From contig NIVC01001765.1 in NCBI GenBank assembly GCA_002269645.1, positions 15,121 through 79,120 of the forward strand: a DNA stretch of 64,000 nt, in the 5' to 3' direction. Below, in pieces: positions 15,902 through 63,110 of this stretch. Both the position numbers and the translations under genes were made by a program. The notes below the pieces were generated by a model that saw only the letters and a program-made list of their open reading frames with translations, did no database searches and was not told the origin of the DNA. The DNA is from Macrostomum lignano (Eukaryota). Position 1 is the stretch's first letter. Every line of letters begins with the position of its first letter.

Positions 15902-15919
15902 TCCTAACGATTTTTTCAG

Positions 15920-33167: not shown

Positions 33168-33195
33168 TAGTAAGTTAGTTAGTTAGTCAGTTAGC

Positions 33196-33230
<35 letters not shown>

Positions 33231-33577: not shown

Positions 33578-33614
<37 letters not shown>

Positions 33615-33915: not shown

Positions 33916-34107
33916 ACGAACACTACTTTGCTTTTCCTACTACTATTTTTTCTAGCCTTTTCACTGACTCTGCTTTCGTTGCCTTTACACCAAACAGACG
34001 GAGCAGGTTGGGGCGGAGGAGGCAGAAGTCTCGAACTATTATAGTTAATTATCAGGACTGCTGTCCCGGTTGGGGTCGCTACGCTGGAGAGCCGTCCTGT
34101 TTACGCG
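33916..34107 (+). CDS. Putative exon 1 of copy 3 (signal peptide plus CCPGW)
   Basis: (ACG)NTTLLFLLLFFLAFSLTLLSLPLHQTDGAGW, then after one missing G, GRRRQKSRTIIVNYQDCCPGWGRYAGEPSCLR G/gtgagt; splices in phase 1 to ttccag/CAATCTGC at 44551, giving R-A-I-C. Confidence 0.75.
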
Positions 34108-37100
34108 GTGAGTTGCACCAACGAGTAGAATATTCACTTAATTAAAATTAAATATTTACGGTTTTAAGTTTTGGTTTCGTTCTGAAGACTTTCCTTTACG
34201 TCTGTGGCTATCAAAACTTGACCTACATGTACGAGCATTCAACATCAGACGTAAAACTTTCATGATGACCTTGACCCAACCATTAAACAATAATGTTAGG
34301 CTTATGTGGGCATCGCTGAGATGTCAAGGGGGTAATTGATATGTTAAGGCTTGTGGGGGGAATCCTCTATGTAGGGATGACAAGAAGAACAATGAGAGAT
34401 ACAATGAGCCAACAACAGGTCAAATATTAACAGAAGTCGTTACTTCGGGGTCAGCGCACTTTCTCACCCCCAACAACTCGATTGCAAATTTTGTCACCAT
34501 TGCCTCGTAACAAAATCAAACTAAGGGAAGAAATCTGGATAAAAAACTGAGGACTGACAAACTGCCGGGTACGAACATCAGAGTGGACAACCATCTTCTC
34601 CGACCCATCCTTCTGGTCCTTCATTTTCACCCATCTTCTGTCTGGCTCGCCAACGAGATTGCTAAAAACTTTTGTAAGACCGTGGGTTGAGTTGCAGTGA
34701 ATAACAAAACGTGAGGAGACCTCACTGGCTCACGCCAATATATTTATTGCCAAAGTTAGGGTGGGTGTAACCACCCTAAGCACACACGCTGCAGCGCTAA
34801 ACCCCAACCCCCAAACCAGCCAGACGTGCACATCTAAGTGCACGCGCACCAACAAGCCAGACTACACTAATTTCCCCCTAGAAGCAAAAGACAGTTACCG
34901 AGTCAAGCAAGTCCGCCATGTACAAGTCAGGTGGCCGCCGCTCTCTCGCCGACCTCCGCGGAACCGTGACCGGCTCGGCCGGTGCCGCCGGTGGCTCCTC
35001 TGGTGCCTCGTCTGCCTGCAGCTCGGGCCAGAAGGTCACCGCGTCGCCGCCAGGATCGGCTGCCTGCCCGGGCGGCTCTGCGGCGGTGCCGTCGTTGTCG
35101 TAGTCGGCGGCCGGCTCCAGTGACGCCCGCCGCTGCACGAAGCGCTTGAGACGGTTGTGGTGCACCACCAGCCGGCGCCTGCGGCCGGTCTCGTCCTGGA
35201 TGCGGTAATTGACCTCGCCCAGGCGCCTCAGGACTGTACGGCCCCTTCCACTTGGCGCTCAGGCACCGCGTCTGGCTGCGCTTGATGACTGAGTTGCGCA
35301 GCATCACGAGCTGGCCCTCTTCGAACGGTACGAACCGAGAGTCCTGGTTGGCCAGCCGGTTGCGCTCGACCTGGGCGCTCCGCGATCGGCCGTGCACCGT
35401 GTCGAAGGCGCTCTGCAGATTCTCCTGAGTCCTCCGCAGGAAGCCGTGATGTCCACAGTCGGCTGCCGGCCGGTCGCCACTTATCAGCCAGCTGTCAAGA
35501 GCCAGCCTCGGTGGCCAGCCGTAGAGGACCTGGTACGGACTGAGGCCGTTGGTGCTGTGCACGGAGGTGTTGTAGGCCCAGGCCACATACTGCAGCTTGC
35601 TGTCCCAATCCTGCTGGTTCTCCGCTGCTCGCCAGCATGTCGCCGATGGTCCGGTTTCCTCGCTCGACGATTCCCGATTCCGTTGCCGCTCGGATAAAAC
35701 GGTGACGTGCGCGTCTTCTCGACGCCCAGCTGCTCACAGAGCCGGCTGAAGACCTCGCTCTCGAATTGCCGTCCCTGGTCACTGTGCAGCACCCGAAGAG
35801 CGCCGTGACGCAGAACCACCAACTTGAGCAGGGCATCCGCCACCGTCACCGCGATGATCACCGCCAGGGCTGACGTCTCCATCCACTTGGAGAAGGCGTC
35901 GCGCATGCTCAGAATGTACGTCTTGCTATCAGTCGTACGCGGAAGCGGCCCTTTGATGTCGATCTGCACCAGCTGCCACGGAGCCGTCGGCTGGCACGTC
36001 GACTGCAGCGGCGCCTTCTGCGGCTTGGTTAGACTTTTCTTGGCCAGGCAGACCGCGCAGCTGGCCACCCAGTTCTCGACGTCCCGTCGCAGACCAGGCC
36101 ACCAGCAGCGCTCAGACAACCTCACCCTGGTCCTGTCGACGTCGAGATGTCCGCTCTGGTCGCACGAGTGCGCCTGCTGCAGGAAATGTGGCCGCAGGTG
36201 ATTACTGGCCGGCCACTCACCAGCAGGACACCCGCCGAGCTCACCGAGGCCTCGTCCAGCAGCTCGCGAACCTGCGCCGCCCATGAATCGGACAGGCTGT
36301 CAATCCCTTCGGTCAGCGCCTGGAACGCCTTGCTCAGCAATGGGTCTTGCAGTTGCTCCTCGTGCAGGCGGCTGTCGTCCCACCGAGGCAGTGGCCGGTG
36401 GTCCGAGTAGACTCTGAAGCTCGGGAAACACAGCAGGTACGTCCTGAAGTGCTTCAGACTCCACACCAGCGCCAACAGCTCGCGGTCTTGACTTACTTGA
36501 CTTAGCTGCAGGGCTGTCCCGGAGGGGACACAGCGGGAAGGCGCGAGCGCCCATTCCGCTAGTCCCTGAACGGCCGACGCGTCGCTATGGACGGAGGGTT
36601 GGCGCCGCCCAGGGAGGTCCCCCAGTGTCGCCAGCAGCTATAATGCTCTCTGGAAAGGAGAGTTCAGCCCTGCGGGTGGCCCGAAGGTAGCGCATGAGCT
36701 GATTAAAGTTTTCGGGTTTGCACGCTTCAGTAATAGATGTGTGTGGCCCGAGGTAAGTGAGTCTGGCCCGCGTGAAGGCGGGACAGATGCTGACGAAATG
36801 CTCAGCGGTTTCGTCACCTGAGTTGCAGAAACTGCAGGTGGCGTTGGTGGCGTTGCCCTGCAGGTACTGGTGCCTGGAGAAGCAGCCGTGACCAGAGAGG
36901 GTCATGGTGGCAGCCCGGATGTCTCTGCGCGAGAGGCGCAAGAGGAGCTTCCGGAGCTGGTGAGAGGGCTGAGGGACAGCGCCTCTGGATTGCCTGCAGT
37001 TCGTGCGGTTCGCCCAAGTCGAGCGGTGCTGAGTCCTGATCCACGCTTTGATGCGCGAGTCGATGACACAGCCAGGAATCGGGACAAGAGGTTCGGGGCC

Positions 37101-40100
37101 GAGAGAGGAGCCGGAGGCACCAACTTTTGCAAGGTGCCAACTCATTTCCTCGGATCCCCACATGCCCCGGAACCCACTTAAGGGTAATTTTGTTGGCGGA
37201 ACCCAACACGTTGAGAAGTTTGATACAGTCGAGGACTGTAGCAGAGTTGGTGCTGCAGCCACTGATGGCGTGCAAGGCAGCTTGGCTGTCCGAATGGAAA
37301 ATAATGTTCTTGCCAGTAACGCCAGTGGCGAGAAGCTCTGCAGTGCAGGAGCTGATGGCCAGAACTTCATTTTGGAAAACACTGGAGTTGACCCCAGTGT
37401 ATTGAGCGTGGGTAGCGATGACCCTCCCGTTCAGAAAGATTCCAACACCAAAGCCGGTGTTGGCTGACTGCTTAGAACCGTCGGTGTAGCAATGAAGCTC
37501 ACCAGGGTTCCATTGGTCATTGATGTTATCGCGCGGGTCGATAGCTACGGAGTAGCGCTGTCTCAGGTTGAGCGTTGAGGCAATGCCATCGGTGAAGACG
37601 CGATTGGCCTGACACTCGTTGAGAAAGTTGAGGCACAGATCGCTATGCGGGACAAGGTTCCGCTTAGCAGGTGCTCTCATGTAAATGAATTTGACGCCGG
37701 CATCAATTAGACGCCGCGTCGTTCTAGCCGCCTCACCCCTGATGAAGAGGTCAAGAGGCGGAAGATTAAGGAAGGCCCCCATGCCAGCAAAGGGCGTGGA
37801 CCTGGTGGCGTTGCAGATGAGCCTACACGCTCTGCCTTGGATCGTGTTGAGCAGGTCTGCATGGCTTTTGACCTGGGTAGCGCTAACCCAGACAACAGAG
37901 GCGTACGTAATGGCAGGTCTAACTACGGAAGTATAGATCCACCAAAGCCGCTTTGGGGATAGACCCCAAGAAGTGCCAAGTGCTCGTCGGAGCTGGGCCA
38001 GGATGGCTGAGGCACGCTTGGCTTTTGCTTTCACGTGGAGGACCAGTTGAGCCGGTGGTCAAGTATGACCCCGAGACATCTGGTCTGGTGCGCGAAGGCA
38101 ATATCTCTGCCGTAGAGCTGCAGAGGACGTATGTTCCAGCGTAGTCTGCTGGTAAACATAATGGCAACGGTTTTGGGCTCAGAGAGTTCCAGACCATTGT
38201 CATTGGCCCAGGATTCTGCTTTGCGGATAAAGCTCTGCATCAGATCCCTGAGCGTGCTGGGAGACGGTCCTGCCACAATGGCCGTGACGTCATCAGCATA
38301 CCCGACTTTGAAGACGGGGTCGGGTCGGGAGTCACTCAAAAGAGCGTCCATGACCAGGTTCCAGAGCGTCGGGGTGAGGACTCCGCCTTGGGGTCCACCC
38401 TTACAGACTCTGGTGGAGGCAGTTTGCCCAAGAAGTTGGGCAGTGACCGTACGGTTGGAGATCATGTACATGATCCACCGTATGAGGGTAGCATGAGCTT
38501 TGCGATTTTGAAGGGCCCTCTGAAACGCTTCAAAGATAACGTTGTCGAAGGCGCCAACAATGTCAAGAAAGAGAGCCAGAGCGTAACCGTCACCCAGTAC
38601 CGCCCTTTCAATCTTCTCGACAATCGCATGCAGGGCGCTGTCAGTCGACCTCCCGGTACGGAAGGCGTGCTGATTATTGCTGAGGGGCATCGCTGTCAGC
38701 TCGCAGGACAGCAGCCGCCAGAGAATAAGCCTCTCAGTGAGCTTAAGCATGCTGACGTTAAGCTAATAGGCCGGAAGGCCTTGACGCTTTGGTAGTCACC
38801 CTTCCCAGGTTTGGGAATAAAGACTACCCGAGCTTCAGTCCAGCATTTGGGAACGTATCCCAGCTGGATAGAGGCCGCATAAGATTGCGGGTGAGTCTCA
38901 GGAACGAGGGTATCTTGGCTGCTTCACGAAGGAGAACAGGGTAGATACCATCAGGTCCAGGAGATTTGAAGGGTTTGAAGGTTCTGACCGCACGAGCGAT
39001 TAGGTCTTCAGTGACAATGCCCGCCGCTAGGGTGGCTCCATCCATCGAATGGTTGGGCTCCGGTCTAGCAGTAGGTACCCTCGGGAAGAATGTGCTAAGC
39101 ATATGCTGAAGCACTTCTTCAGGGTCTTTAGTAAGAGAGCCATCATCTTTTTTGATCATGGCTAATTTGGACATTTTGTCCATTGTAAGGGCCTTGACAA
39201 GCCTAGAAGTAGGTCTGTCTTGATCCAATTCATTGCAGAATTGGCGCCACTTACATTCCTTGGCCTTGCGCACTTCAGATTTGAAATTGCGGGAGGCTTG
39301 CCGGAAAAGCTCCATGTCCTCCGGGTTTCCGGTCTTCATGGCACGGCGATGAAGGCTTTTGGCCTTCCGCCTGAGTTTCCCCAGCTCCGGGTTCCACCAC
39401 GGCGCCGAGGTCTTGCCTTTGTAGGCGCGAGCAGGACAAGCCGCTACGTAGGCTGCAATAATGCAACCTGTCAGCGTCTCAGCCATATGATCCACATCCT
39501 CGCAGGTCTCAATCGGACGTAAGTCCGTGAGTTCCTGCAGGTGCAGATCAAGGGCAGCCTTGTAGGCCGCCCAATCAGTGTTGCGGATATTGCGCCTCCA
39601 AGTGATCGGAGACTGGGTTTTAGTGTCCGCGATGTTAAAGGCGATAAAGCAGTGGTCAGACAGGGAGGGCTCCTCAGACCAGACTCTCCACTCCTCAACT
39701 CTGTCAAAGAGTCTTGGGGTAACGAGTGTGGCGTCGAGGACCTCGGTCCATCTGCCATTATTAAAGGTAGGAGTGTTGCCGCGGTTGCAGAGCATGAGGT
39801 TTGTGTTAGAGATGAGGGCCAGAAGCTCCTCTCCTCTAGTGTTGGTATCTTTGCTGCCCCAGTGCTTGTGGTGCGCGTTGAGGTCGCCCCCTAAGCACAG
39901 CTCAGCGTTCTGGGACTCGCAGTACTGCGCGAGGCGCAGTAAACTCTCAGGAGCAGGGTCTCTGTCGCCTGGGATATAAACCGAGGCAACAAGACACGTA
40001 CGCGGAGAGAAATGATTAGATTGGATGACGCAAAGGTCTCCATCAGAGAGATCAGTCCTCAGCCAAGCCTGGAGATGGCTAGCAGCGAGGATAGCCGCTC

Positions 40101-43100
40101 TAGGGCGGCTGTTCCCCGGGCCACACACATAAAAATCAGAGTAGCCAGAGGGAATGTTGGGCAACTTACCGTTGCGCATCCAGGGTTCCTGGATCAGGAT
40201 GAGGCCTGGCCTGTACAGCTCAGCAATCTTCATCAGATTTACTGACGCAGATACGCAATGCTGTAAATTAATTTGCAGACAGAATGTCGCTCCTTTGGCA
40301 GCGTGGAGCTTAGTCATACTGTATTAAATGCAATTTCTGGCTAGAGCCCAGGGCCATCAAGGAGACTTGGACAACAGATCGTCCTCGTCCCAGGCCGCTG
40401 GGGCTTGACTGGGAGATGGGAGTTGGTCGACGTCCATGGCCTCCTCACCCCCACCGGCCCCCCAGCAGAGTCCTCAGGCTCCGATGACAGGATGGAGGAA
40501 GCTTCCTCACCTGCATCTTTACCTTCAGACCCCACCAGGGTGGCCGAGGAGAGCTCGGATTCCGAAGACCCGGCCTCGTCCTCAACTCCTTCTCCGACTG
40601 GCAGGTTTGGTTCCTGGGGCTCGGCCGGAGCCGTTACCGCGGTCGCCGAACTGCTGCTAGCAGAGGGGCGAGACGCAGCTTTGGCTTTGGGATCGGCTTG
40701 CGCCTTTCCTTGGGCCTTAGACTGCGCCCCGCTCTTGCCGGAGATGCCGAGGTTGGCAGTAGCCTTCCCTTTGGCAGACTTTCCTCGGCGCATCTTGAGC
40801 TTGAGGGCACCCAGCTGGAAAGAAGATCCATTAGGGTACCGACTCGCCCAAGTGCTGGAAAGGCCGAGGACAATTGAGTTGCCCGTCTCCCCCCTGCGGA
40901 CTTTACGGTGATACACCAGTCCACTAGCAGGGAGGTCGGGGTTCAGACGCAGTAGGACCCGGCGAATAACGTCTGGTCCAGCTGCGGTGCTCTTAGCAGG
41001 GACGAAAACCACATAGGGTATCGTCTTTGGACGCTGGCCCTCGCGAAGAAAAAGAGCTCCGCCAAGGTCAGCATCTAAGGAGACCGTCGGTAGCCGCTGA
41101 AGCAGCTGCCGAGCGTCCTCCTCGCTGCTAGGAGCAATAAGAACGAATGTGCTTCGCAGCACCATCCGCTCAATGCCGATGGAGATTCCCTCCTCGACAG
41201 TCAGCTCAATCAGATAGGAGTCAACAGCACTCCACACTTTTTGAAGCTGATCAGTGGTCCAGTCCTGGTCGCGACCTTAGATGATCACTCCCGGGATTTT
41301 GGCCTTGGCCTACGCCGCAAAGGTAGCTCCCGAAGGAACCTCCTTGTTGGCAGTGGCCATTTGTTGCGCCGTGGTTTCGGCCTCAGCAGCCGCAGCAGCA
41401 TTTCCAGGGAGCGCCGCCGCTGAACTACTGGAGCTTCCACCGGCCGGCCCGTCTGGTTGCCTTGGGACGCCAGTCGCTTCAGCATCCATGGTGGACGCCG
41501 CCGCTTTGGCCCCCGCAGCTCCCTTCTTGGCCTGCCTTTTGGCGCGTTGTTTAGCGCGTTTGCGCTCAAGCCGAGCTCGCTGAGCTTCATCGGATCTGCC
41601 AGATTTGGCCGGTCCTTTAGGCTCAGAGCTCGCGGTTCCCTTAGATCCACCAGCGGAGCTGGCAGGTCTTTGGGTATTATGAGTTTGGTAGCTCTGGTCG
41701 GATCTGCCAGCAGAGCCAGCCGGTCCTTCCTTTGCCACAGTTGAATCAGTCGGTTGGGATCTGCCAGCAGGGCCGGCCGGTCCTTCGGACTGAGGTTGGG
41801 GTTTAGAAGGGTCCCCGTCCCTAGAATTAGTTTGGTTATCCATAGGCGGCTCGAAGGCCATGATAAAAGGTTGGTGGGCTACCCTCAAAGGGGCGCGGTA
41901 CCCACCCGGCCGCTCCACCTGACCGGGCAGTAGGCCAATAGCACCCTCAAGGCTGGCCCGACACCAGGAGGGGGACCGCTAGCGACCGGACTACTCCCCG
42001 GCCTTCCAGCCCATCGGCACGGTCAACACCTTAGGCATTAGAGAGTACGTTGAGCAGTACCACGGCCTGCAGGTTGGCGAGCCAGACCCGCATACCCAAA
42101 TTCGGCCGAAGCCACTGGATAGGGTCGCCAGCGCCGGAGCCCAGTCTGTCCAGCAGCCCTAGGGACTGCCTTGAACACACGCGGGGACGAGTACCCTGGG
42201 TCGACTTGCGAGACAGCGTGGGGGGGGGGTCTGCGGCTGCCAGAGGCAAATAGAGGGTGCAGACCTCCCACCAGCCTTGACCTGCTGAAGATAGGGGCAG
42301 GCGTGAAGCATCGCAGACCTTAGCCCATGGGCCTAGTCTGTCTCATACTTCACTGGCATGCTGAATACGCCTTCGCGTGCCAGCTCGCGGTCAGTCGCCG
42401 AGTAGTTGCGCTCGGCCTTGTTGAGGGTGCGCGAGGCGAACGCCACAGGCAGCTCGGCGTCACCGTGCAGCTGGCTGAGCACCGCGCCAACAGCAAACTG
42501 ACTGCTGTCGCAACTGAGCACGAACTGCTTGGTGAAATCCGGCAGCCTCAGCACCGGAGCCGTCGTCAGCCGGTCCTTCAACTCGCGGAACGCTCGCTCG
42601 CAGTCGCTGCTCCACGCGAAGTCCCTTGATGTCACGCTGACGTCGTGCAGGACCCTCGCCGTCTGGCTGAAGCCTGTGATGAACCGGCGGTAGAACCGCA
42701 GCATTCCGAGAAACCGCTTCACCTCCTTGATCTTCGTTGGGTTGGGCATGCTGCGAATGGCCTCGACCTTGCCGGGATCCGGTGCGATGCCCTGTTCGCC
42801 CTGTTCACGTCTGCCGGCTGCTCCCAGACGAAGATTTTTGCTTCTCCTATCACTAGCAGTTTCAGCTTCTTTGCCTTCTTCTTGTCGTCCCATTCGCAGT
42901 CGTCGGCGAAGTCCTCAAACGTGCCGAGCCACGTTCTCACGTTTTCGTCCCATTCGCAGTGGTCGGCGAAGTCCTCAAACGTGCCGAGCCACGTTCTCAC
43001 GTTGTCGTCCCATTCGCAGTGGTCGACGAAGTCCTCAAACGTGCCGAGCCACATTCTCACGTTGGAGTCGCCGCTAAACTTTGGAGGCAATAAACTGGCT

Positions 43101-43806: not shown

Positions 43807-43865
<59 letters not shown>

Positions 43866-46800: not shown

Positions 46801-49800
46801 GTCAGGAACTCGATCAAGAATGTGAGACGCAGCAGACGCTTCTTTATCTTTGATAACTCGTCGAGCGTGGAAAGCAGGGACGAGCGCTATCCTCTCGGTG
46901 TAGACGATACCGTCAACAATAGAGGACTGTGGTGGCTTCGACGGCTTGACGGAGACGTCGCGTTCCGATGGACGGACAACCTGATCAACGAGGTGCACAC
47001 AGGTCAAGGCTTTCTGCTACCGATCGAGCATGTACCGGAGTTCTACGGTGACGGCTACGATCAGACTTCCGGACCTCGGAGCATCCACCCGATCGACAAT
47101 GTGCACGGAGTCGTGCACTTCGCGTCCCAGTTCGGAGTGGACGCGGTCGGTGGTCGCAGTCTGCAACAGCCGGATCAAAGCCGGTGGCTCACAACCACCA
47201 ACATTCACGCCCAGATGCAGAGCTTTCGCTTCGATAGACGAGACGGCGAGTCAGCAAAGTTCTGGGTGATTGGCGAGGATGTGATGGGCAACAGCCGTGT
47301 GAACAGCTTCCTCATGCACATCGACTCCTCACCTGCCGAGTTAGGGACGCTCAGTCTGACTAACAGAGGCGTCGAGGGGCTCGTTGTGCACCACAGCAGA
47401 GACCTACACAGTTTGAGGTGAGTCCGTTTGAATGCAAAAACTGCTGATATGGACTCGAGTGCCATGACATTTTTGCCCCGTTTGTAGAGCTCACTGGACC
47501 GCGTCCGACTTGCACAGCGGCTTGCACACTGTTCTGTGGGAGATCTTCGACAACCACACTGACGAGATTGTGCAGATGTACTCCAACATGGAAGGACGGA
47601 GACATTTCGACAGTCTTACGGTAAGAAAGCTTATTAAAAATGACTGTAGGCAAATGATTGTAAAGTGCCGGATTGCTTCCAGCTGTGCCAAAGGGATTCC
47701 GAGAGACCAGACAACTGCTACTGCACTCAAGCTACTGGCTGCTACAACTCATTCTTTGCGGCATCGCCAAACACAAATGCCACAACGGAGCACAACCACG
47801 ATTTGCACATTCGACTCACAGTTACAAACGGAGCGGAGTTGGTCGCGAGCAGCGTGATGAAGATTAGCATCGATTTGTCTGCTCCTCATCCTGGCCACGT
47901 GTTCGACGGCGCGCCTGGCGATGAAGAGGTCGACTTCCAGAACGGGCGACACCTGACGGCGCACTGGAGCGGCTTCTTTGATCCCGAGAGCGGAGTACGA
48001 ATGTACAGATATGGCTTCGGAGTATCCTGTCAGTCAGAGTCGCAACTCATACAAGAGACGACGGGTCTTGAGGCGAGCTGGGAGGCTCCTGGTCCTGGTC
48101 GGTACTTCGTCACGGTAGTCGCTTTCAACAACGCGATGGAGCCATCTGCCGCTGTGTGCTCTGACGGAGTCCTGATCACGGATCAAAGGCCAGAAGTGAG
48201 CCAGTTGAGCATCGAGAGTCTTCGAGTCCGTCCAGGACTCATCCTGGACGCAGCTCGCAGGAGCTCTGGTACCTGACCGACCTTGGTCGCAGACAGAAAC
48301 TTCTAAACGATAATGAGACGTGCAGGTAGAGCCAACAGTCTGCTAATTAGCCCTTGCTACGAGCTCTTAATAATGGAAAGCATCTCTTTTTCAGAGCTCG
48401 AGCAACCGTGATGGCGGACAGCGGAGTTCTGGCACTTGATCTCAGCAAGTTCAATCGCACTGTAGTGCTCACTCACGAAGGAGAGTTCTGTGAGCAAATC
48501 GGACCAGCTGGAACTGAGTTCTATCTCACCAAGGACGACAGGGTAAGGCGCGTGTATTGCTGAGTATTTTTGAGAAGAAGCTTCTTATCAGAGAGCAGGC
48601 ACTGCATTTCAGCTGAAACTAAGCTGGATTGCCTCCGACAGTGTTTCCGGACTGAGGCACTCCATCCTGTCAGTAGTGAGCAACGAGGACTCTGTTTCTG
48701 ATCTTGCCAATCGCGTAGTCACGACACACTCTAGCGAAATTCTCGACCACATTGATTTGAAAGATGGTCAGCAGATCTACTTGACAATAGCGGCAGTAAA
48801 CAGGGCGGGACTGTCGTCAAACATGGTGTGATTTACACTGCAACTTATCTAGACTGCTTGCTATGAAACGGTGAATGTTTGTTCGTATCATTTTAGAGTG
48901 TCGGACCACTGACTGTAGACACCAGTCCACCGAGCTTCTCGGGCTCATTGTCCGTCAGTACCAACAATGAGCACTTGTTAGTCCGTTGGGATGCGGGCGA
49001 CTTCGTAGATCCGGAGTCCGAGTCGCTCGAGTTTGAGATCGGAGTCGGTTAGTGTCTGTCAATCTGTTATCTCATACTGGAGATTAAGGTAATGCATCGT
49101 TTAGTTCTCATGGTTTAATTTTATAGGCAGCAAGAGCACTCTACAGACATTGTTCATTTCGAGAGGGTCAAGCAAGGACCTGAGTGCAGTCACAGTCACA
49201 CGCCAGTGACTTGCGCATCTCTGGAGCTGAGCCAGCTTGACTGGAGTTTAATCGGCGATCACACATACTACGTGTCCATTCGATGCACCAATGAAGCTCA
49301 GCTAAGAACTGTTGCATTCGCTGAGCCAATTGTACATAACAACCGACTTCCCAGTGTCGGTTTCGTTACTGACGAGGATCCGAGTATCGACTCGGACTCA
49401 ATGCTCGGGGTAAAGTGGTACTTTGATAGCCTAAAAGATACCAGTTGTGTATTTTTAGCGTGAATTCTGAGTACACGAACAAAACACTGACATTCTCAAT
49501 TTTAGACACCACACGACATTCAGTATCAGCTGCGATCGGACTCGCTAAGGTCGCGATGGACCGGATTCAAATTCGCAAACGAGTTCCATGTTTCGGTTGT
49601 GGATTCTCAGCACAAGGAGCTCGCATCTGTGACCCTCCCTTCAAATGCAACTCGACATCAGTTTGACGGACTCAAGTTGGATGTATTCAAGGCAAGCTTA
49701 TACACAGTCGTTCGATTCAGACTCGAAATGGTTTCATTCATTGAAATTATGTCTCTTCTGTTTGATTACGCTTCAGACCTACTTTACTCGAGTAACAGCA

Positions 49801-52800
49801 TCGAATGTGGTCGGAAGCGTCTCTGCAGAGTCAAGCGGTGTTACTGTCGAGTCTCGAGAGCCCCTCCTCGAGTTGAAACCTGTGAACTGGAGACCCGACA
49901 ATGATGGGTCGCTGACAGATAATTTCCAAAGCTCTTTGTCGACGGTTGGTTTGAAGTGGACAAAGCCGAAATCACCCCTCGATCTGCTGTTTCACGACGT
50001 CAGTTGGGGTCTCGAGTTGAAGCGAGGAGACGGTACGGTAGAAAAATCATTTCTCCTTGTTTATCTGCAAGTAGACTGAGTTGCTTCCCGTGTTGACCCA
50101 CTCGCTTTAGATTGGATCACAGTGGAAGAGTTTAGACGCGTCTCGCACTCGGGCGAGACGGTCCTCGTCACGAATTTGCACCTCATCGATGGGGCCACTT
50201 ACCGATCGCGAATGAAGCTCTGTCATGGTGAAGTTTGCTCAGAGGTCGAGACTGCTCCAGACTTTGTGGTCCTGCACACTTCCCCAGTGGCTGGAGCGTG
50301 GAGTGTCAATCTTGAGGCTGACAACCAGACAGTATGCTGAACAACATACTCTGTCACAAATGCATTTATGGCGTCTAAACAAGAACATTTTCTTTTGTTT
50401 TCAGATCACAGTGCAGATGGACGAGTTCAAGCAGCTAGGATCAGCAGGAAGCAGTGTTATCAGCGGATACCAGTGGTCATTGCAACACGATGGTGCCAAC
50501 ATCGTACAATGGACGGAATTGAAACTCGATTCGAGTAACTCGGTAGGTGGCTGCTTCACTTGAAACAATGAAACAATGGTGGTATGTAGCTACCTCCTAA
50601 TTTGACTATCTATACTTTAGACTAAATCTATATCTCTACCGTGGCCTCTGAAATCGACGAAATGCATCCGTTTTGCGATTCGCTGCTTCAACAAGGCAGG
50701 CCTGTCGACTGTAGACAGTAGAGAGCTGAGAGACTGCAGCGCGTACGACCCGAAGCTGATAAGTAATCCGAACGTGATGGACGCAATCGGGCCAGTGAAG
50801 CTTGAGAAGAATGACCAATGGACGGTCGATGACGTGGACTACTCAAACTCGAGCGCTCGACTTGCAGCGGTGTGGCCCCAGCTGAGATATTTGGTGAGAG
50901 AACGGGATTCCATTCGAAACAAGCTTTAAAAGGCATACATGCATGGTTACCAAAATAGGATATAATCCTTACAGAACTACGAATGGGCTGTTCTAGCAGC
51001 CAGTGGGACCGGAGGCTCCGGTTACTATGACCGAATTCTGCTTGAGCCGCCAAAACGGCCGACGAGTCACGCGAATGCGATCGCAGGCGGCTTTACTCGG
51101 GATGAGTTCGTGAACGTTCCCGGAGTTCAGCTGCAACCAGGGACTCGGTATCACGTGTGCATTCACGCTAACGAAACTTTGCTGCAATTTGAGAAGTTCA
51201 CTCAGCTGTTGCCTGAGTTGAGCGAGTGCAGCGATGGCGTCACTGTGCTTGGAGATGTAGCAACCGAAGGCAGGATCGCAGTGAATGGACGATTTGCCAA
51301 TCAGATGCTGGTAAGTTGAATGTCGATTTTTGCAGTAAGTTTTACAAAGTAGATGTTTTAATGAATTCATTCATTGTTTGCAGTCATCTGTGACTGAGTT
51401 TCTTCTCGAGTGGTCAGGATTCGAGTCTGGAACGTCTACGGACATGCCGCACGTGACTGACATAAAGTACTACGAATACTGCATTGGATCATTCGCCTCC
51501 GGTTGTGACCTAATCGATTGGAAAAACGTCGGCGGTGCTCGCAGTGTGATTGTTACTCAGCTCAAGGGAGTCCTTCAGGAAGGTCACGTCTACTTTGTCT
51601 CGGTGAGAGGTAAGTGAAGAATTGAATTTCGCAAATAAACTACTGAGCTTCTATTGACTTGTGCCTTATGCTCCAGCTGTCGACTTCATCGGTCGCGAGA
51701 GTCGGTCAAAGCCCCGGTCGATCCGAGTGGTGCTGCACGGTCCTAAGTCCAATCACTCAGCAGCTATCTCTGTGGGTCTGCGGCATGTAATCTCGAACAG
51801 CAATGGCCAAGAAGTGTGCTGGAACGGTAGATTCTCTGACCCCGTCGCGGGCATTCGTCGCTACTGGGTCGGTCTCGGATCTTCGCCCGGTCGTCCTGAT
51901 GTCATTCCGTACACTGAATCAGATGGCGAGTGTGTTTGGTGGACAACCAAGCAGCTGTCATACTCCAGAGACGGACAGCACTACTGGGTGCTGCTGAGAG
52001 CTGAGAACTTTGCCGGACTTATATCGAGCGACCACTCGAAGCCAGTGCTCGTAGACAGAAGTCCACCAGTAGCTGGATCGGTGATCGATATCGACCCGAC
52101 CGTATCAAACAGCACCGATTGCAACTTTCGGTTCAATATGGACGGCATCTCAGCAAAATGGACCGACTTCCATGATCCTCACAGTCACGTGAGGGACTAT
52201 TCGGTGGCGATCGGATCATGTCCAGGTTGCCAAGACGTGATGCCGTATCTTCACGTCGGTGTTCGACACAGTAAGTCAAACGAAGCTAATTATGCTCATT
52301 ACTAACTCTAAACAAAGAATACAGACGTACTTTGCTTACTTCAGGTATAAAGATTGACCATCTGCGTTTGCAACCTGGACAGAGGTACTTTGTCAATGTC
52401 AAAGGCTGCAACGCGGGGGATCTCTGTTCTGTGGCGTCTTCCGATGGTGTCATTTTGGATTCCACACCTCCGTTGAACGGAATCATCTTGATTGGTTCAA
52501 GCGACGCAAACCAACAGTACCTGCGATCAAGGTGAGTAAATGTGTTTTTAGTAACAATTTTATCATAATGACTTGATACGCTGAAAGCCACTCATAGCCT
52601 AAACATGCATGCTGTACTTTTGCATGTGTAGCTCATCGCTAGAGTTTTTGCTATACGGATTCAACGATCCAGAGTCCGACATTGCATATCACCGTTGGGG
52701 AGTCGGTCGCGAAGAGTCTGACTCGCCGGATGTTATAGCCTGGATCAAAACTTTCGAAAGGAATTTGTGCGACACTCTGGAAGCTTGCCAACGGGCATAC

Positions 52801-55800
52801 GTCTAAAGGTGTTTGTGGAAACTGTGAATAAAGCAGGTGAGCGGCGGGCATGACGTAATCATAGCGTCGATCGTGCTAAACTTTGCTGAATATTTGAACA
52901 ACATTTTTACAACCATTTAGGTCTTACGACATTGACTGAGTCGAGCAAGTTTCTGATTGACGACACACCTCCCGAGATCGAGACTGCTCTCTCAGCAAGC
53001 GAGACTTTCGGTCAGATTGAGCCGAACTGGCTCGTCCTGGACGACATCATGGTGGTAGAGTGGAGCGTCTTTGACAAGGAGAGCGGCATCAAAGAACACT
53101 GGATCTCTCTGTCTAACCATGATAACGGACGAGTGACGTTCGAGCCCGTTAAGGTATCTGACCTAGTTTTGCAGCTGATTTATTCAATTTGTATGTAAAC
53201 TAATGCTGCGCACCTCTTGTTGACATCGCAGATTCCCGGTCTGCTGAGCAACTTTACATTCAGCGATCTGGATCTGAAAGACGGAGCCAACTACACTGTT
53301 CACCTCGTGTCGTGCAACCTGGCGGACGCATGCACTCGTCAGACGGCCTCGTTGGCTGTGGACACTTCGCCTCCGATCACGGGACACGTAGCCGTCGCGA
53401 CACAGTCGGCCGTGCAGCTGGGCAGACACATCGAGGATGGCCTCACGTGGGATGGAAACGAAGTCAACATCAGCTGGGTGGGATTCCACGATCCTCACTC
53501 GGGAATCGATCGCTACACCGTTCAGATGGGCACAACATGGTTCGGATCGGAGCTTTTGTCGGTAGGTTGTGAGCCACAAAGAATTTTAAAGTTACCGCGA
53601 AATAGTTATCACAAAACTGCATTGCCTGCTTTTTGTTATTTAGGTCACAGAGGTTCCGCACAGTGACGAAGGAGTTGGTCTGCCGCTGAATCCTCACGAA
53701 GGTCCCATTCAGATGGCCAGCTTTGAACTGAAGAGAAGTCTAACTGAGGGCACGTCCTTCATTGTGCACATTGTTGCAGTCAACAAGGTAATAGTCAGTT
53801 GGATAATTACTGTGAAGCTACTATTTAAACTTGAAAGTGTGTAATTTACTGATTCAGGCCGGTCTCCACAGTCAACCAGTTCAAGCGGCATTGTCCGTGC
53901 TGGAAAGTGGTCACTTGTGGCTCCTTCGTCGGTGTGCTGGCGCAGCTACTTGCTACGGGCACTGCTCGTGCGCTCCGCAGCATCAGACCTGCCGAGGAAC
54001 TGAGTGTCGAGCCGTCGATGTAGTGGATAACGTCGACAACGAAGTAGAGGTTCTAGATGTGTCCGCCTTCGGTCCTCGAGGAGAATCTCAAACTGATGCA
54101 AAAACAACTCCGACTAGGTCTCTGTTGGCAGCGACTTGGCGAGTCCGTCGAGCAATGGGACGACCACCTGTTCGTTATGAAGTGAGTGCAGGTCTGGCTG
54201 AGTACAATGAGCCGAAGGGTATCTACGACGCTGTTCACGAGCGCGTATGGCATGATGTCGGTCTAAGGACGTTCTTGGCATTGAATATCACAGCTGGGCG
54301 TCGCCTCAATGTATTTCGATCATACAAGGTGTTTGTTCGGGCTTGGTTTGATCACAACACGCACGTCGTGTTCAGCTCGGACGGCGTACTGGTCAACCCG
54401 ACCTTTCCGCGGGTAAATCGACACTACGGTGTCGGCGTCAAGGACCTGTTGTCACCAGATAGTCGACGGGACACCGATTTCATAACTAGTACTGACAGTC
54501 TGACGGTAGGGTGGCGAAATAAGTTCACGAGTCTAAACGAAGCACCGCCGCTGTCATTCCGCGTGTCTATTGGCAGTGAGATCGGAATGGACGATGTTGC
54601 AAACGTCCTCATGCCTCCTGGAAACTTCACTTATACATTCAATGAGCTGCAACTTGAGCCAGGTAAACGGTACTTTTCTACCGTGACCGCTCTCGATGAG
54701 AACGGACTCTCCGTGTCAGTATCATCTGATGGGTTCGTACTGGACTTGGACAATCCGTCTACAGGATTGGTGTTCAATAGTAATGGTAAGTTGCCTATGT
54801 CAACCAAAATTATTTATCTAACTATTTATAGTACTATCCTAAACAATTTCAATCAAGATAAACAATTTCTCACAGATCACAGCAACTCAAAGTACTCCAG
54901 CGACCAAACGACTCTGTCATGCAGTTGGCACAGCTTCTTTGATCGAGAATCCTACATCAAGTCGTACTCTGCATGCATTACTTCCAGCAATGATGCCAGC
55001 AAATGCGACATCGCCGACTGGAAGAATGTTAAGTTCGAGCAGAGAGCTACTTGGAAAGGACCTTGGCATCATGGAAGCACCTATTTCTGTCGTGCAAAGG
55101 CGGTCGACGCGGCAAATCGCAGCTCAGAGGCGATCACTTCTCCCGGAGTGACTATCGACACGACACCGGCTATTGCGGCAACCGCATTGGACACCGGCCG
55201 ATTAATGTCGGTAACCCGAGCTTCGAAGAAGGAGCGCTCCGACCTCCGAGCTCAGCGCCACTCAGCCACATAGTTCTAGCTGGACTCGAGTCTGTTTCGC
55301 CACGCTGGACTTTGCAAGATGGTCGAGCGATCGCAGTCCGCATTGGACATTCCATGGCCGTGGACGGAGAATCTGTGCTGCTGCTGTTCGGTCGGGTATC
55401 GCAGACTTTGACAACCGAAGCTGGACGTCGATATCGGATGCAACTGTTTGCGTCTCATCTTCCCGTCTCTGACCCGCTATCAGTTACGGTCGGCGGTCTC
55501 GTCTCGGGTCCGGGAATGCTGCAGACGTTCCGGTTGTTCACCGATCTAGGCGGAGTGAGCTCCGGTGTAGAGTGGCACAAGCAGATATTCTACTTTACTG
55601 CCGAGTCAGCGGAATCAACCGTTTCCATTGAGTCTCTGTCACCTCACACCGGTCTGGGTGAGTTTCCTCTCGTTAGTCATTTGTTTCATTTGTTTTGCTT
55701 ATGCTTTAGTTTTGCCCCTTTACAAAGAGTTCAATATCAATCGTCAGCCATCGACATGGTCTCAGTATCCGTGCTCAATGTGGGAATTGCTGACTACAAC

Positions 55801-58800
55801 ACAACGGCTGCATCCGTTCATGTGGACTCGTGAGCGTCAGAGACAGCGGCACTGTGCACGCCAGTTGGGACATCTCTGATCCGAGAGTGGCATCAGCGAA
55901 GTTCTATGGGCCATCGGAACAGTTCGTGGAGGGACGCAGCTTCTGCCGTTTACTCAGCTCGGACCGGCCAACGAGGCAAAGGCGGATGTGATGCTCACTC
56001 ACGGAAGCAATGTCTACGTGTCGGTGCTGGCTATCAACGGTGCCGGAATTCCGCGACTCTTCCACTCGCAACCCGACCTGATCGACTTGACTCCGCCGGC
56101 CTTTGACTTTGTGCATGACGGAAGCTCAAGCGCTGGCCACACCGATCTGCAGGAAAATGCGCGCGAGCTGTCCGTTCGATTCGGAGTCGAGGATCCGGAG
56201 TCGGGCCTGAGCGAGTGCTTCTGGTGCTCGGGAACTTCTGCAGTAACCTGCGACGTAGCGGAGTATGTGAAGCTGGCACAGGGCCAGCTGTCAGCAACAC
56301 GGCTCATCAACGAGCCCGAGAAGCTTCTCGGCCAGCGAGTGTTCAGCTTGGTGAGGTGCTCGAACGGAGTCGGACTGGTGTCTACAGGGTGAGTCACAGT
56401 CGGTTCAGAGGTGCATCGCAGCAGGATGACATGCTCAAAACTTGAATACCATTTCAGCGTATCAGCAGGCGTGCTCATCTACAACGGAGCTCCCGATGCG
56501 GCACACGTGAAGCTGCGACTGCTCAGCACCTCTGTCACGCCATTCGGTCAAACGAATTCCGTGCTCGGTAACGCCACAGACCTGCAGCTGAGCTGGAGCG
56601 GCTTCACCGATCGAATTCCGATTCGGGACTACGATATTCGACTGAGAGAAGTGACTCGAAACGCCGTAGTGCCGGACTGGACTCGGGTGAAGGGCGCCTT
56701 CGTTCAGGCGGCAGCTTTGCACGGTCTGTCGCTAGCGAGCGGGCAGCGCTACCGAGCTGAGGTGCGAGCCGTGAACGCTCTGGGGAAGCTGAGCAGCATT
56801 GTTGAGCGCGAGTTCTCGGTGGACTCGCAGTTTCCAGCGCTGACTGGTAAGAGTGGACATTGTGACTTGTTTTCAATTTCGAATTCGACCCGAAATGCAA
56901 CCGGAAACTTAAATGCAACCGCAAACCCAATGCAACCGGGAACCCAAATGCTACAGGAAACCCAAATGCAACCTTAAACCCAAGTGCAACCTCAAACCCA
57001 AATGCAACCGCAAACCCTAATGCAACCTCAAACCCGAATGAAACCACAAACCAAAATGCAACCGGGAACCCAAATGCAACCTTAAACCTAAGTGCAACCA
57101 CAAACACAAATGCAACCACAAACCCAAATGCAACCTTAAACCTAAGTGCAACCACAAACACAAATGCAACCACAAACCCAAATGCAACCTTAAACCTAAG
57201 TGCAACTAAAAACACAAATGCAACCACAAACCCAAATGCAACCTTAAACCTAAGTGCAACCACAAACACAAATGCAACCACAAACCCAAATGCAACCACA
57301 AACCCAAATGCAACCGAGAAACCGAAATGCAACCACAAACCCAAATGCAACCACAAACCCAAATGCAACCTTAAACCTAAGTGCAACCACAAACACAAAT
57401 GCAACCGCAAACCCTAATGCAACCTCAAACCCGAATGAAACCGGGAACCCAAATGCTACAGGAAACCCAAATGCAACCTTAAACCCAAGTGCAACCTCAA
57501 ACCCAAATGCAACCGCAAACCCTAATGCAACCTCAAACCCGAATGAAACCACAAACCAAAATGCAACCGGGAACCCAAATGCAACCTTAAACCTAAGTGC
57601 AACCACAAACACAAATGCAACCACAAACCCAAATGCAACCTTAAACCTAAGTGCAACCACAAACACAAATGCAACCACAAACCCAAATGCAACCTTAAAC
57701 CTAAGTGCAACTAAAAACACAAATGCAACCACAAACCCAAATGCAACCTTAAACCTAAGTGCAACCACAAACACAAATGCAACCACAAACCCAAATGCAA
57801 CCGGGAAACCGAAATGCAACCGGGAAACCGAAATGCAACCACAAACACAAATGCAACCACAAACACAAATGCAACCACAAACACAAATGCAACCACAAAC
57901 ACAAATGCAACCACAAACACAAATGCAACCACAAACACAAATGCAACCACAAACACAAATGCAACCACAAACACAAATGCAACCACAAACACAAATGCAA
58001 CCGGGAAACCGAAATGCAACCACAAACCCAAATGCAACCACAAACCCAAATGCAACCTTAAACCTAAGTGCAACCACAAACACAAATGCAACCACAAACC
58101 CAAATGCAACCGAGAAACCGAAATGCAACCACAAACCCAAATGCAACCACAAACCCAAATGCAACCTTAAACCTAAGTGCAACCACAAACACAAATGCAA
58201 CCACAAACCCAAATGCAACCTTAAACCTAAGTGCAACCACAAACACAAATGCAACCACAAACCCAAATGCAACCGAGAAACCGAAATGCAACCGCAAACC
58301 CGAATGCAACCTCTGTAGTGACTTGGCTTGTGTTTTGTGGGGTGCTGAGGGGGTTGCTGCGTACACTTTACCATTGTGCTCTTTTAACTCTCTCCTTCGC
58401 CTGTTTTTGTGCGTACGTGCACGTGACTAATATGTATAGTTTACAGTCCCCAAATTATTGATCGGTTAAAATACTATTTCGACAAATACATATATGAATG
58501 ATTTTATCAGCCTATCGCTAAGCATCTTTCTGCCACACAAACTAAAAAAAAGTGAAGTCTTTACAACCTCAAACCCAAATATGCAAAACCGCACCACAGG
58601 CAGGCAGTGGCAAGTCAGCTTCGACCCCGCTAAGCGCCAGCTGCTGCTGGACTGGTCCGGGATGTTCCGCTCCGACAGCTCGCTGCTGTTCGAAGTGACG
58701 GTCGAGACCAAGCCGGCAGCTGGCGACCTTCAGCGCTGGCTGGAGACCCGCGAGCCGAGTCTGCTGCTGAAGGCCATCGACCCGGGCAAGCAGAGGCTGT

Positions 58801-58868
58801 TCGTCAGGCTTTCGGCCATCAGCGAGGCCGGCCTGGCTTCGTCCGTCTACCGGGAGGTGCTGGTTTAG
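33916..58868 (+). CDS. Copy 3, near-complete giant secreted protein gene: signal peptide, EMI-like motif, EGF-like exons, FN3/Ig-like repeats, DUF642-like module; no C-terminal transmembrane segment seen
   Basis: Exons reconstructed by hand: 33916-34107, 44551-44655, 44751-44897, 45356-45478, then many short-intron exons to the last exon 58600-58868. Several single-base indels occur in homopolymers. Confidence 0.85.
34673..34866 (-). repeat. 3' LTR (194 bp)
   Basis: tgtaagacc...gactaca; adjacent to polypurine tract (aggggga aa on the minus strand, 34871-34879). Confidence 0.9.
34878..36487 (-). pseudogene. Gypsy RNase H C-terminus and integrase, frameshifted
   Basis: LVWSLKHFRTYL, GHLDVDRT-WWPGL-CAVC, WQLVQIDIKGPLP, VLHSDQGRQFES, PFYPSGNG, AWAYNTSVHST, split over several frames. 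Confidence 0.9.
36585..40317 (-). pseudogene. LINE ORF2: APE endonuclease, reverse transcriptase, RNase H, C-terminal CCHC finger (frameshifted)
   Basis: QINLQH/LIQEPW/GDLNAH/SDH (APE); PQGGVLTPTLW/GYADD (RT); YTDGS/SDSQAAL/WVPGHVGIRGNE (RNase H); CSFC-ETAEH-C. Confidence 0.95.
40341..41861 (-). pseudogene. LINE ORF1 with two in-frame stops near 41270-41310
   Basis: One frame from the ATG at 41861 to 40341; low-complexity N-terminus and a globular core (VRRVLLRLNPDLP) reminiscent of LOA-clade ORF1 (family assignment from recall). Confidence 0.7.
42393..43117 (-). pseudogene. Gypsy gag N-terminus (with a 60-bp triplication) fused directly to RT thumb/RNase H
   Basis: MAKSEQASLLPPKFSGD, three copies of NVRTWLGTFEDFADHCEWDD, then PDPGKVEAIR...FLGMLRFYRRFI...LPDFTKQFVLSCDSSQFAVGAVLSQ; protease and RT core absent. 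Confidence 0.85.
43124..43136 (-). promoter_or_regulatory. Primer-binding site, complementary to a tRNA-Leu 3' end
   Basis: TGGTGGCAGCGGT on the minus strand 1 nt inside the 5' LTR; eukaryotic tRNA-Leu(AAG/TAG) ends ACCGCTGCCA-CCA. Confidence 0.8.
43138..43317 (-). repeat. 5' LTR (180 bp)
   Basis: Aligns with 34673-34866 apart from two block indels and a few substitutions. Confidence 0.9.
43810..43865. repeat. (CT)n microsatellite in intron 1 of copy 3
   Basis: Direct. Confidence 0.98.
44551..45478 (+). CDS. Three symmetric phase-1 Cys-rich EGF-like exons (105, 147, 123 bp)
   Basis: ICFGRLQYCPNGGSCNSPDFCSNCNPTHYSPRCD; CPQVPFC...AYKLSSDRKACI; TCSWRREHNLCFPGVCNGYHTECQCDAGF; canonical ag/gt boundaries. 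Confidence 0.85.
55203..55760 (+). other. DUF642/galactose-binding-like (CBM-like) module of the giant protein (also at about 25421-25960 and 7740-8285)
   Basis: NPSFE ... SQTLTTEAGRRYRMQLFAS ... WHKQIFYFTAESAESTVSIES resembles the DUF642/CBM4-9 pattern; recognised by eye, not by HMM. Confidence 0.6.
56893..58313 (+). repeat. Expanded 18/19-bp minisatellite (about 78 units) in the last intron (56847-58599) of copy 3
   Basis: Direct; higher-order blocks such as NATLNLSATTNTNATTNP recur. Confidence 0.97.
58314..58565. mobile_element. Solo LTR (252 bp)
   Basis: tgtagtgac...gtctttaca with a 5-bp TSD acctc (58309-58313, 58566-58570); ends resemble those of the Gypsy LTR in this window. Confidence 0.75.

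Positions 58869-60905: not shown

Positions 60906-63110
<2,205 letters not shown>

Follow-up and report, generated by a model that had tools for sequence, protein, structure and literature searches.

A Macrostomum lignano gene that probably encodes a giant secreted protein with an EMI-like/EGF head, an FN3 array and a DUF642 module

Several groups of described proteins each resemble one part of the gene considered here. In SCARF1 (SREC-I), MEGF10/PEAR1, the EMILINs and multimerins, and TGFBI and periostin, a CCxGW...C motif is followed by x-I-C and then by an EGF-like module, after which these proteins continue as EGF-rich membrane receptors, with coiled-coil/C1q regions or with FAS1 domains; they have no FN3 array and no DUF642 module. 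Fibronectin, the tenascins, usherin and anosmin contain rods of tandem FN3 modules, which in the tenascins follow EGF modules. In plants, DUF642 proteins are small proteins of the cell wall that contain one or two copies of the domain. We analyzed a 64,000-nucleotide (nt) stretch of the genome of the flatworm Macrostomum lignano (contig NIVC01001765.1, positions 15,121 to 79,120; hereafter the window), and we think it probable (about 0.6) that 33029-58868 on its plus strand is a 35-exon gene for a secreted glycoprotein of ~3,375 residues and ~370 kDa, whose likely role would be that of an exported, glycan-binding, multimerising rod.

The domain order of the predicted protein is signal peptide, EMI-like head (CCPGW...C), three EGF-like modules, beta-rich region, FN3 array and DUF642. 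Compared with the EMI proteins, the flatworm head has lost most EMI cysteines. The order of EGF and then FN3 is that of the tenascins, and the top Foldseek matches are to fibronectin FN3 4-7 and 7-10 and to anosmin-1, but identity with tenascin was rejected because there is no fibrinogen globe: neither fibrinogen_C nor any other C-terminal domain was detected, and the protein ends in an FN3-type module. Laminin and collagen-binding modules and a transmembrane segment are also lacking, in contrast to other long FN3 proteins, and its FN3-type module sequences are nearer to bacterial Ig-like/Big families than to classical fn3. The Pfam family of the plant and bacterial proteins (PF04862) is matched by seven of eight orthologous segments of the DUF642 module, whose predicted jelly roll resembles that of carbohydrate-binding modules (CBMs); the module differs from the plant proteins in being a single copy inside a 370 kDa animal protein. 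A named adhesive-protein identity was also considered and set aside, there being no sequence link to any such protein to follow.

UniProt already contains a model of this gene family, A0A1I8JEP6 (P0006 below; M. lignano, 'EGF-like domain-containing protein', 3,128 residues, 15 cluster members), which is 94% identical over 95% of our reconstruction, from the second EGF-like module (EGF2) to an identical C-terminus (...SSVYREVLV); it skips exon 7 and part of exon 20 and carries no functional annotation. With this model in UniProt, and with uncharacterised orthologues annotated in many invertebrate genomes, the locus is not the undescribed system for which the initial annotation of this DNA had named it the best candidate, although the statement that it could not be assigned to a named gene holds, in that no named or characterised orthologue was found. 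The family itself is in databases, widely annotated but uncharacterised. A second M. lignano entry, A0A1I8G1H5 (P0005), is a 61%-identical paralogue with the UniRef name 'Alpha-L-rhamnosidase'; the name is likely wrong and probably stems from a weak FN3-type match to Ig_Rha78A_N.

When the N-terminal 759 residues were searched exhaustively with HMMER, 253 cluster representatives were returned at E<=1e-3, 129 of them at E<=1e-10, and several matches to this region are 3.0-3.4 thousand residues long. Relatives of this size were found in molluscs, annelids, brachiopods, echinoderms, hemichordates and amphioxus. Thirty clusters were looked up, and nearly all were uncharacterised, hypothetical or given a generic domain name. 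Their taxa are Branchiostoma, Saccoglossus, Ptychodera, sea stars, crinoids, Lingula, Owenia, Lineus, bivalves, gastropods, Octopus and the sponge Ephydatia, whose match is shorter (1,383 residues) and is to the head region. No vertebrate, arthropod or nematode was among the thirty clusters sampled, which as a sample is no proof of absence. One Octopus vulgaris cluster member has been auto-named 'D-galactoside-specific lectin'. Nothing relevant on the accessions, or on DUF642 in the matrix proteins of animals, came up in literature searches, and the literature searched contained no experimental study of the orthologues.

Orthologues from Branchiostoma (LOC144927586 / LOC118405866, ~3,412 residues), Lottia (LOTGIDRAFT_168990, 3,932 residues), Owenia, Saccoglossus, Acanthaster and Octopus are colinear with the flatworm protein at 30-31% identity over 58-79% of length. 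They share the N-terminal beta-rich region, the FN3 array, a Cys knot (LVRRC..C.GHC.C) and the relative position of DUF642, and the amphioxus protein shares the EMI-like/EGF head. The Lottia protein (P0008) differs in having extra F5/8C-like and trefoil modules at its N-terminus and ~20 tandem 15-residue units (DTTPPVVIYIHDGTV, ~residues 3370-3650), an expanded FN3 linker/first-strand segment that may be genuine or an artefact of the gene model. Judged by this colinear, full-length similarity, the gene is a member of an old, uncharacterised metazoan 'EMI-like/EGF-FN3n-DUF642' family.

The 5' end and intron 3

The initial annotation had placed a hidden first exon at 33916-34107 and joined it across a 10.4 kb intron to a series of EGF-like exons. 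We compared this region with a paralogous locus, L001, which is the locus of P0004, a 759-residue protein (96% identical in a search with the N-terminal 757 residues) in which signal peptide, EMI-like head, EGF trio and body are uninterrupted. The comparison identified two exons upstream, so that the supposed first exon is exon 3, and the true signal peptide exon lies ~0.9 kb upstream, at 33029-33069. The L001 exon used as reference (ATGCTGACGAATCGACTG...ATCGG/GTGAGG, with the slash marking the splice site) is a 41-nt first exon encoding MLTNRLILLAVLIG. Within the reconstructed protein, MLMTKVVLVAFLIRGCLGFSA is the top 19-mer on the Kyte-Doolittle scale (1.9), the maximum elsewhere being 1.35. 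The hydrophobic stretch at 33916-33997 that had been read as signal-peptide-like is instead the pyrimidine tract of an 88-nt intron (33910-33997). Once this intron is removed, ...NLCTYQRSETQYYRS joins RSRLGRRRQ... in frame, giving ...YYRS-RSRLGRRRQKSR... as in P0004. The RRRQKSR patch and the CCPGW motif of the earlier proposal are read directly in exon 33998-34107.

Over its first 121 residues, the protein encoded by exons 1-3 is 79% identical to P0004 in an ungapped alignment, and the open reading frame (ORF), phases and splice sites of these exons are intact. An inverted copy of the exon 2 region lies at window positions 1-314 (95% identity). Two other 5' ends were rejected: a start codon from an out-of-frame ATG at 33684, as L001 reveals the proper exon 1 (33029), and a spliced-leader acceptor at the AG after (TTAG)n, a repeat that by comparison with L001 is intron 1. 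These (AACT)n / (TTAG)n microsatellites occupy several hundred bases of intron 1 (33168-33660) and are also present in L001 and in an inverted copy at 223-715.

Intron 3 is filled with transposons, as had been described: integrase, reverse transcriptase (RT)-RNaseH, AP-endonuclease, RVT_1 and RNase H ORFs lie within it on the minus strand. L001 matches the window at 33593-34137 and then from 44185 onward, and its intron 3 measures ~549 nt versus 10,443 nt in the window, so that L001 acts as an 'empty site'; ~155 nt of the L001 intron are without counterpart in the window. Nested retroelements have inflated the intron from ~0.55 kb to 10.4 kb and left the reading frame unbroken. At the acceptor (44550/44551, ...TTCCAG/CAATCTGC, phase 1), the joined reading is ...EPSCLR-A-ICFGRLQYCPNGG..., also written ...EPSCLR-A-ICFGRLQYCPNGGSC.... 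The splice from 34107 to 44551 proposed initially is thus predicted to be in frame, with phase 1 on both sides, and it is backed by the read-through of L001 and P0004 and by the order found in the amphioxus orthologue (P0007), namely signal peptide, ...YFCCPGY...C.PVC, three EGF-like modules and body.

A 132-nt direct repeat inside the intron may represent element termini. A 60-bp triplet (42882-43064) is associated with the insert, and a 41-nt direct repeat (44145-44185 / 44484-44524) lies at its right edge, where ~128 nt of intron sequence appears locally duplicated.

Modules of the predicted protein and a proposed role

The window contains three copies of the gene unit, of which the one described so far is copy C; copies A and B are considered below. 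The 35-exon map of copy C was obtained by protein-guided mapping to P0006 and P0004 together with manual splice-site reading. De novo exon-chaining at four penalty settings skipped small exons or split real ones, and because it was unstable the final exon map rests on the protein-guided mapping and manual reading. All 34 introns are GT-AG, and most are 62-100 nt long and AT-rich. When the 5' part of copy C is combined with the majority consensus of the copies, an uninterrupted reading of 3,371 codons results; the reconstructed protein has 3,375 residues, in agreement with the earlier estimate of roughly 3,000 or more, and a predicted mass of 371.5 kDa, with 67 Cys and 22 N-glycosylation sequons. 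The three symmetric phase-1 EGF-like exons reported earlier are present, with six cysteines apiece, and the same phase, 1-1, is found in the three exons that follow (63, 72 and 153 nt).

Two segments near the 3' end could be misread. We rejected 53910-54023 as an intron, since its G+C content is 0.62, versus ~0.3-0.45 in real introns, and it encodes a Cys knot kept in amphioxus and Lottia. An 18-bp repeat was rejected as an in-frame, glycosylation-rich NATTNP tail because it is preceded by a GTAAGA donor, a splice to 58600 produces the perfect start of a module, and P0006 lacks it; as P0006 also shares the C-terminus, the minisatellite is intronic and the last exon is 58600-58868. The repeat, which has ~79 units in copy C, ~19 in copy A (6248-6589) and ~10 in copy B (~27100-27250), reads NATTNP in one frame that in the consensus is in frame with the preceding exon, and it can mislead gene prediction.

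No hydrophobic segment was found beyond the signal peptide, nor any transmembrane or glycosylphosphatidylinositol signal, in line with the missing C-terminal anchor noted initially; the predicted signal peptide and the lack of an anchor point to secretion by the classical pathway. In the head, CCxG[WYH] followed by a Cys and an EGF-like module is read directly (QDCCPGWGRYAGEPSCLRAIC...), and CC.G[WYH] is conserved in orthologues. A family head profile matched the SCARF1 N-terminus (residues 16-67) at E 6.3e-7, over the CCxGW+EGF part only, and matched the EMI domains of TGFBI (E 0.022) and periostin (E 0.39) marginally; Pfam EMI matches one of 15 family members (E 1.4e-4). Exons 4, 5 and 6 each encode six Cys in EGF spacing, the SCARF1 EGF module aligns to exon 4, and single family members gave weak matches to EGF_PEAR1L (5.4e-4), EGF_CA (2e-3) and EGF (3.5e-3).

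In a Pfam scan of the whole protein, fn3 scored 63.1 bits (cut-off 25; best stretch residues 3191-3263), and no family besides fn3 and the Ig-like Ig_Rha78A_N was found. Single FN3 modules are weak against Pfam (16.8-21.8 bits), and fn3 (PF00041) matches 7 of 15 family members. A self-trained hidden Markov model (HMM) recovered 20 modules between residues 459 and 3372, which bears out the 'more than a dozen' repeats first noticed, and two more gaps resemble diverged modules; the predicted protein has about 23 FN3-type modules, interrupted by the conserved cysteine knot. In our reading of the alignment, D-x-T/S-P-P would be this family's form of the linker between FN3 domains, and W-x-G-F-x-D-x-E-S-G-I..Y its form of the FN3 signature of a B-strand Trp and a C-strand Tyr. 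The structure predicted by AlphaFold for an FN3-FN3-DUF642-FN3 segment is all-beta, with a predicted local distance difference test (pLDDT) of ~70-85 in the modules and a mean of 61.6, and the top Foldseek matches to it come from the FN3 arrays in fibronectin, anosmin, Robo2, Dscam, titin and neogenin (E 5e-8 to 1e-5). Neither a four-module segment nor the DUF642 profile found useful matches when searched by sequence against the PDB.

The module initially described as carbohydrate-binding-like corresponds to DUF642 and lies ~600 residues from the C-terminus. Its match in the window is weak (see below), and seven of eight orthologous segments match the family at E<=0.1 (best E 3.5e-9), the amphioxus orthologue reaching 33.5 bits, above the Pfam cut-off. 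The domain model (pLDDT 72, predicted template modelling score 0.69) is a beta-jelly roll, and Foldseek matched it to CBM22, CBM4-2, CBM6, CBM16, CBM61, a porphyran-binding CBM and a hyaluronan-binding module. Target-normalised TM-scores were ~0.5-0.68 for stand-alone CBM chains and 0.22 for CBM6, a larger chain. The predicted structure thus points to a galactose-binding-like / CBM-type jelly-roll fold.

On these grounds, we propose that the protein would be exported and would form an extended rod of ~80-100 nm. The EMI-like/EGF head may multimerise or dock to matrix proteins, as the EMI heads of EMILINs and multimerins do, the DUF642 module may bind a glycan, and the two together could cross-link or organise a glycan-rich extracellular layer, whether matrix, mucus or surface coat. 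Far more tentative, and in our view doubtful, is a broader reading in which the gene is the flatworm member of an overlooked family of giant glycan-binding scaffolds that is older than Bilateria, acts as a core organiser of the surface coat, mucus or adhesive layer, and has been tandemly amplified in Macrostomum; the family would have gone unstudied through its absence from the classical model animals. If the gene model set out above is right, a conserved ~370 kDa matrix protein of fixed architecture extends from molluscs to amphioxus, with a shorter sponge relative and no studied member, and was probably overlooked through not being evident in vertebrates, flies and nematodes. As transgenesis, RNA interference and in situ methods exist for M. 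lignano (PMC5730564), the gene would offer a practical way into the function of the family and the ligand of animal DUF642.

Counter-evidence, reading frames and copies of the gene

Several points weigh against the gene and protein as set out above. On the window N-terminus, Pfam returned neither EMI (PF07546) nor any EGF family at E<=1. The window DUF642 match (20.1 bits, E 5.8e-4, profile positions 4-139 of 157) is below the 27-bit cut-off, and the structure models, for which the alignments were shallow (4 to 8 sequences), have moderate confidence. The splice junctions, that at 34107/44551 among them, have all been deduced from sequence and homology. P0006 starts at MTCQICMF, an internal Met in EGF2, and is without signal peptide, EMI-like head and the first EGF-like module. 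Exons 1-3 are 81% identical to L001 versus 97.8% for the body, and the break coincides with the retroelement insert. Finally, copy C as assembled is not one continuous ORF, owing to ~six 1-nt exon deletions relative to its paralogues.

With no Pfam call for EMI or EGF, and with a head profile that matches SCARF1 and only marginally TGFBI and periostin, we call the head EMI-like rather than EMI. Motifs, cysteine counts and the family profile favor the EMI and EGF identities first assigned to these segments, while Pfam recovers neither on the window protein.

The break in identity indicates that the head and body of copy C have different histories; an older head may have been joined to a recently duplicated body by gene conversion or by a rearrangement. 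An improbable alternative is that exons 1-3 (33029-34107) are an old head remnant, unspliced to the body, and that the transcript starts in or after the insert, by trans-splicing or at an internal Met, yielding a protein without signal peptide or EMI-like head. This would fit the fall in L001 identity exactly at the insert, the start of P0006 in EGF2, and spliced-leader trans-splicing, which is common in M. lignano (PMC8629364). However, in exons 1-3 the ORF is intact and has an ATG and a good signal peptide, the splice sites are canonical, the phase is right, and identity to P0004 is 79%. The inverted flank that follows copy A also carries this diverged head (95% identity), which has therefore been maintained in two array copies; moreover, a signal-less body would be senseless for an EGF/FN3 protein with 67 cysteines, and 10 kb introns can be spliced. 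The 97.8% identity itself starts 366 nt before exon 4 (44185-53226). We therefore infer that the second gene of the array has, in exons 1-3, its own, maintained 5' end, the bodies having been homogenised or recently duplicated. As P0006 starts at an internal Met, it is the public 3,128-residue model that lacks the true 5' end, a lesson for annotation in that three exons lie hidden upstream of a 10 kb intron filled with retroelements.

The single-base deletions of copy C lie near 48253, 49133 and 52762 in the FN3 array, at 55179/55180 in exon 32, and near 55829 and 55879 in exon 33. Relative to P0006, exon frameshifts number ~six in copy C, 6-7 in copy B, 4 in copy A and 6-7 in L001; nearly all remove a single base, and most shorten GG, TT, CC or AA runs. 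Since duplication, exons have diverged by 1.7% versus 4.4% for introns (2.6 times less), with a ratio of nonsynonymous to synonymous rates (dN/dS) of ~0.2-0.4. Substitutions in copy C fall 17/9/40 at codon positions 1/2/3, and synonymous:nonsynonymous counts are 39:27 (C), 11:6 (A) and 12:13 (B), the random synonymous fraction being 0.24. The copies have been under purifying selection since duplication.

It is unlikely, in our estimate, that copy C, and perhaps A and B, is a decaying duplicate with real frameshifts and with 5' exons uncoupled by the insert, the protein being made by other genome copies. The frameshifts themselves, one substitution to a stop codon in B, the 10 kb nested retroelement insert in intron 3, and the many redundant genome copies, which make one cheap to lose (PMC5730564; P0006 cluster n=15), would fit such decay. 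Set against it are the dN/dS and the lower divergence of exons, the absence of nonsense substitutions from C and A, GT-AG kept in all 34 introns, and the enrichment of private indels of copy C in introns; in addition, single-base homopolymer contractions resemble uncorrected PacBio consensus errors, and the assembly (Mlig_3_7, GCA_002269645.1) was built from PacBio reads with Canu, with SSPACE scaffolding (PMC5730564). Because the substitutions indicate purifying selection, most frameshifts, those of copy C included, are probably long-read consensus errors. A second lesson for annotation is that no assembled copy has an unbroken ORF, probably owing to such single-base errors in the consensus.

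Self-comparison of the window yielded one large unit in three copies at 97.7-98.7% identity. The copy C stretch runs from 45691 to 57031 and onward to 58947, and that of copy B from 15902 to 27253, with its flank to 33891. Copy A plus its flank (1-15097) mirrors 18610-33891; the downstream flank alone (1-5960) mirrors 27940-33891 and includes copies of exons 1-2. An 804-nt run of N, the sole gap in the window, splits copies A and B, so their ends are contig edges, and we rejected the idea that they are biologically truncated duplicates, as the gap cuts both. The low GC at 15098-15901 in the composition profile is an artefact of these Ns, and the head-to-head A/B palindrome is a scaffolding join and no sequenced junction.

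The gene had been described as amplified here. This stands for the tandem pair of B and C, which lie ~5 kb apart in one gap-free contig (15902-64000) and are the only physically contiguous pair; the inverted third copy is linked to them across the scaffold gap, and redundancy is a known property of the assembly (PMC5730564). It is indeed quite possible, if somewhat short of an even chance, that the local amplification is largely an assembly product, with A, B and L001 being haplotypic or homeologous versions of one or two loci, misscaffolded or unmerged. A and B are head-to-head across the N gap; L001 stops at the end of its contig and, over the overlap, shares 99.2% identity with copy A; the assembly contains 180 Mb of duplicated blocks at >=95% identity (PMC5730564); and the DV1 line has extra large chromosomes (PMC10733133). 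However, B and C are tandem within one contig, and the copies differ by ~1-2% in substitutions with a clear tree in which A and B are closer to each other than either is to C, so that at least two distinct genes are present here. In this genome the gene stands as a tandem pair, B followed by C, with more near-identical copies elsewhere. A 480-residue ORF of the gene region matched a hypothetical protein of M. lignano at 90% identity, and later matches to the gene were on contig NIVC01001764.1 of the same assembly.

Feature coordinates and flanking sequence

Table 1. Positions of features in the window (slashes in sequences mark splice sites; L001, P0004 and P0006 as in the text)
Feature	Position	Strand	Remarks
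Copy A, inverted	5961-15097	-	equivalent of C 48392 to stop; cut by scaffold gap
Scaffold gap	15098-15901		804-nt run of N between copies A and B
Copy B	15902-27939	+	equivalent of exon 8 to stop; 5' part absent as contig begins at 15902
21-bp minisatellite, 53 copies	30249-31372		in 5 kb spacer, copy B to exon 1 of copy C
Copy C	33029-58868	+	probable 35-exon gene
Exon 1 (41 nt)	33029-33069	+	ATG at 33029; predicted signal peptide MLMTKVVLVAFLI; donor CG/GTGAGG; aligned to L001 exon 1
Intron 1	33070-33696	+	(TAGT/TTAG)n microsatellites; acceptor TTTTCACAG/CGGCTGTC matches L001 acceptor
Exon 2	33697-33909	+	...GCLGFSATESLFDIGGDD...NLCTYQRSETQYYRS; EMI-like head starts; region 81% DNA identity to L001
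Intron 2 (88 nt)	33910-33997	+	GTAAGC...AACAG; pyrimidine-rich 3' part
Exon 3	33998-34107	+	RSRLGRRRQKSRTIIVNYQDCCPGWGRYAGEPSCLR; ends ...TTA CGC G/GTGAGT, phase-1 donor
Intron 3 (10,443 nt)	34108-44550	+	~10 kb (34138-44184) inserted relative to L001 (intron 3 ~549 nt)
132-nt direct repeat	34726-34857 / 43163-43294		95% identical, 8.4 kb apart
Integrase ORF (Integrase_H2C2, rve) of retroelement	35484-36284	-	inside intron 3; long terminal repeat (LTR)-type
Long interspersed nuclear element (LINE)-type ORFs	36814-40317	-	in intron 3; AP endonuclease 38824-40317, RVT_1 38031-38750, RNase H 36814-38034
LTR-type RT-RNaseH ORF	42333-42893	-	in intron 3; integrase and RT-RNaseH ORFs flank the LINE
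Exon 4, EGF-like 1 (105 nt)	44551-44655	+	phase 1-1, six Cys
Exon 5, EGF-like 2 (147 nt)	44751-44897	+	phase 1-1, six Cys; P0006 begins at internal Met here
Exon 6, EGF-like 3 (123 nt)	45356-45478	+	phase 1-1, six Cys
Exon 7 (63 nt)	45574-45636	+	phase 1-1; in P0004, skipped in P0006
Exons 8-11	45709-45780, 45860-46012, 46092-46465, 46537-47417	+	family-specific N-terminal beta-rich region
Exons 12-31	47488-54785	+	FN3-type module array; exons in next three rows
Exons 12-18	47488-47620, 47683-48325, 48395-48542, 48613-48825, 48897-49047, 49127-49409, 49506-49682	+	FN3-type array
Exons 19-25	49777-50032, 50111-50331, 50405-50542, 50621-50893, 50975-51310, 51384-51609, 51677-52270	+	FN3-type array
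Exons 26-31	52345-52531, 52632-52836, 52921-53153, 53232-53561, 53644-53787, 53858-54785	+	FN3-type array
Conserved Cys knot	53910-54023	+	within exon 31
Exon 32	54876-55657	+	end of one FN3 module and most of DUF642 jelly roll
Exon 33	55748-56388	+	DUF642 end and FN3 modules
Exon 34	56458-56846	+	FN3 module matching Pfam fn3; donor ACTG/GTAAGA
18-bp minisatellite, ~79 copies	56888-58311	+	inside last intron (56847-58599)
Exon 35	58600-58868	+	last FN3-type module; stop TAG 58866-58868
CSL / Suppressor of Hairless / RBPJ homologue	60906-63104	-	downstream, opposite strand

The 21-bp minisatellite between copies B and C has a short inverted counterpart at 3936-4112, downstream of copy A. In the CSL homologue that follows copy C, the ORF at 61743-63104 matches LAG1-DNAbind (E 2e-48) and BTD (E 8e-46), and that at 60906-61247 matches TIG_SUH (E 6e-26); the protein contains long polyglutamine tracts.

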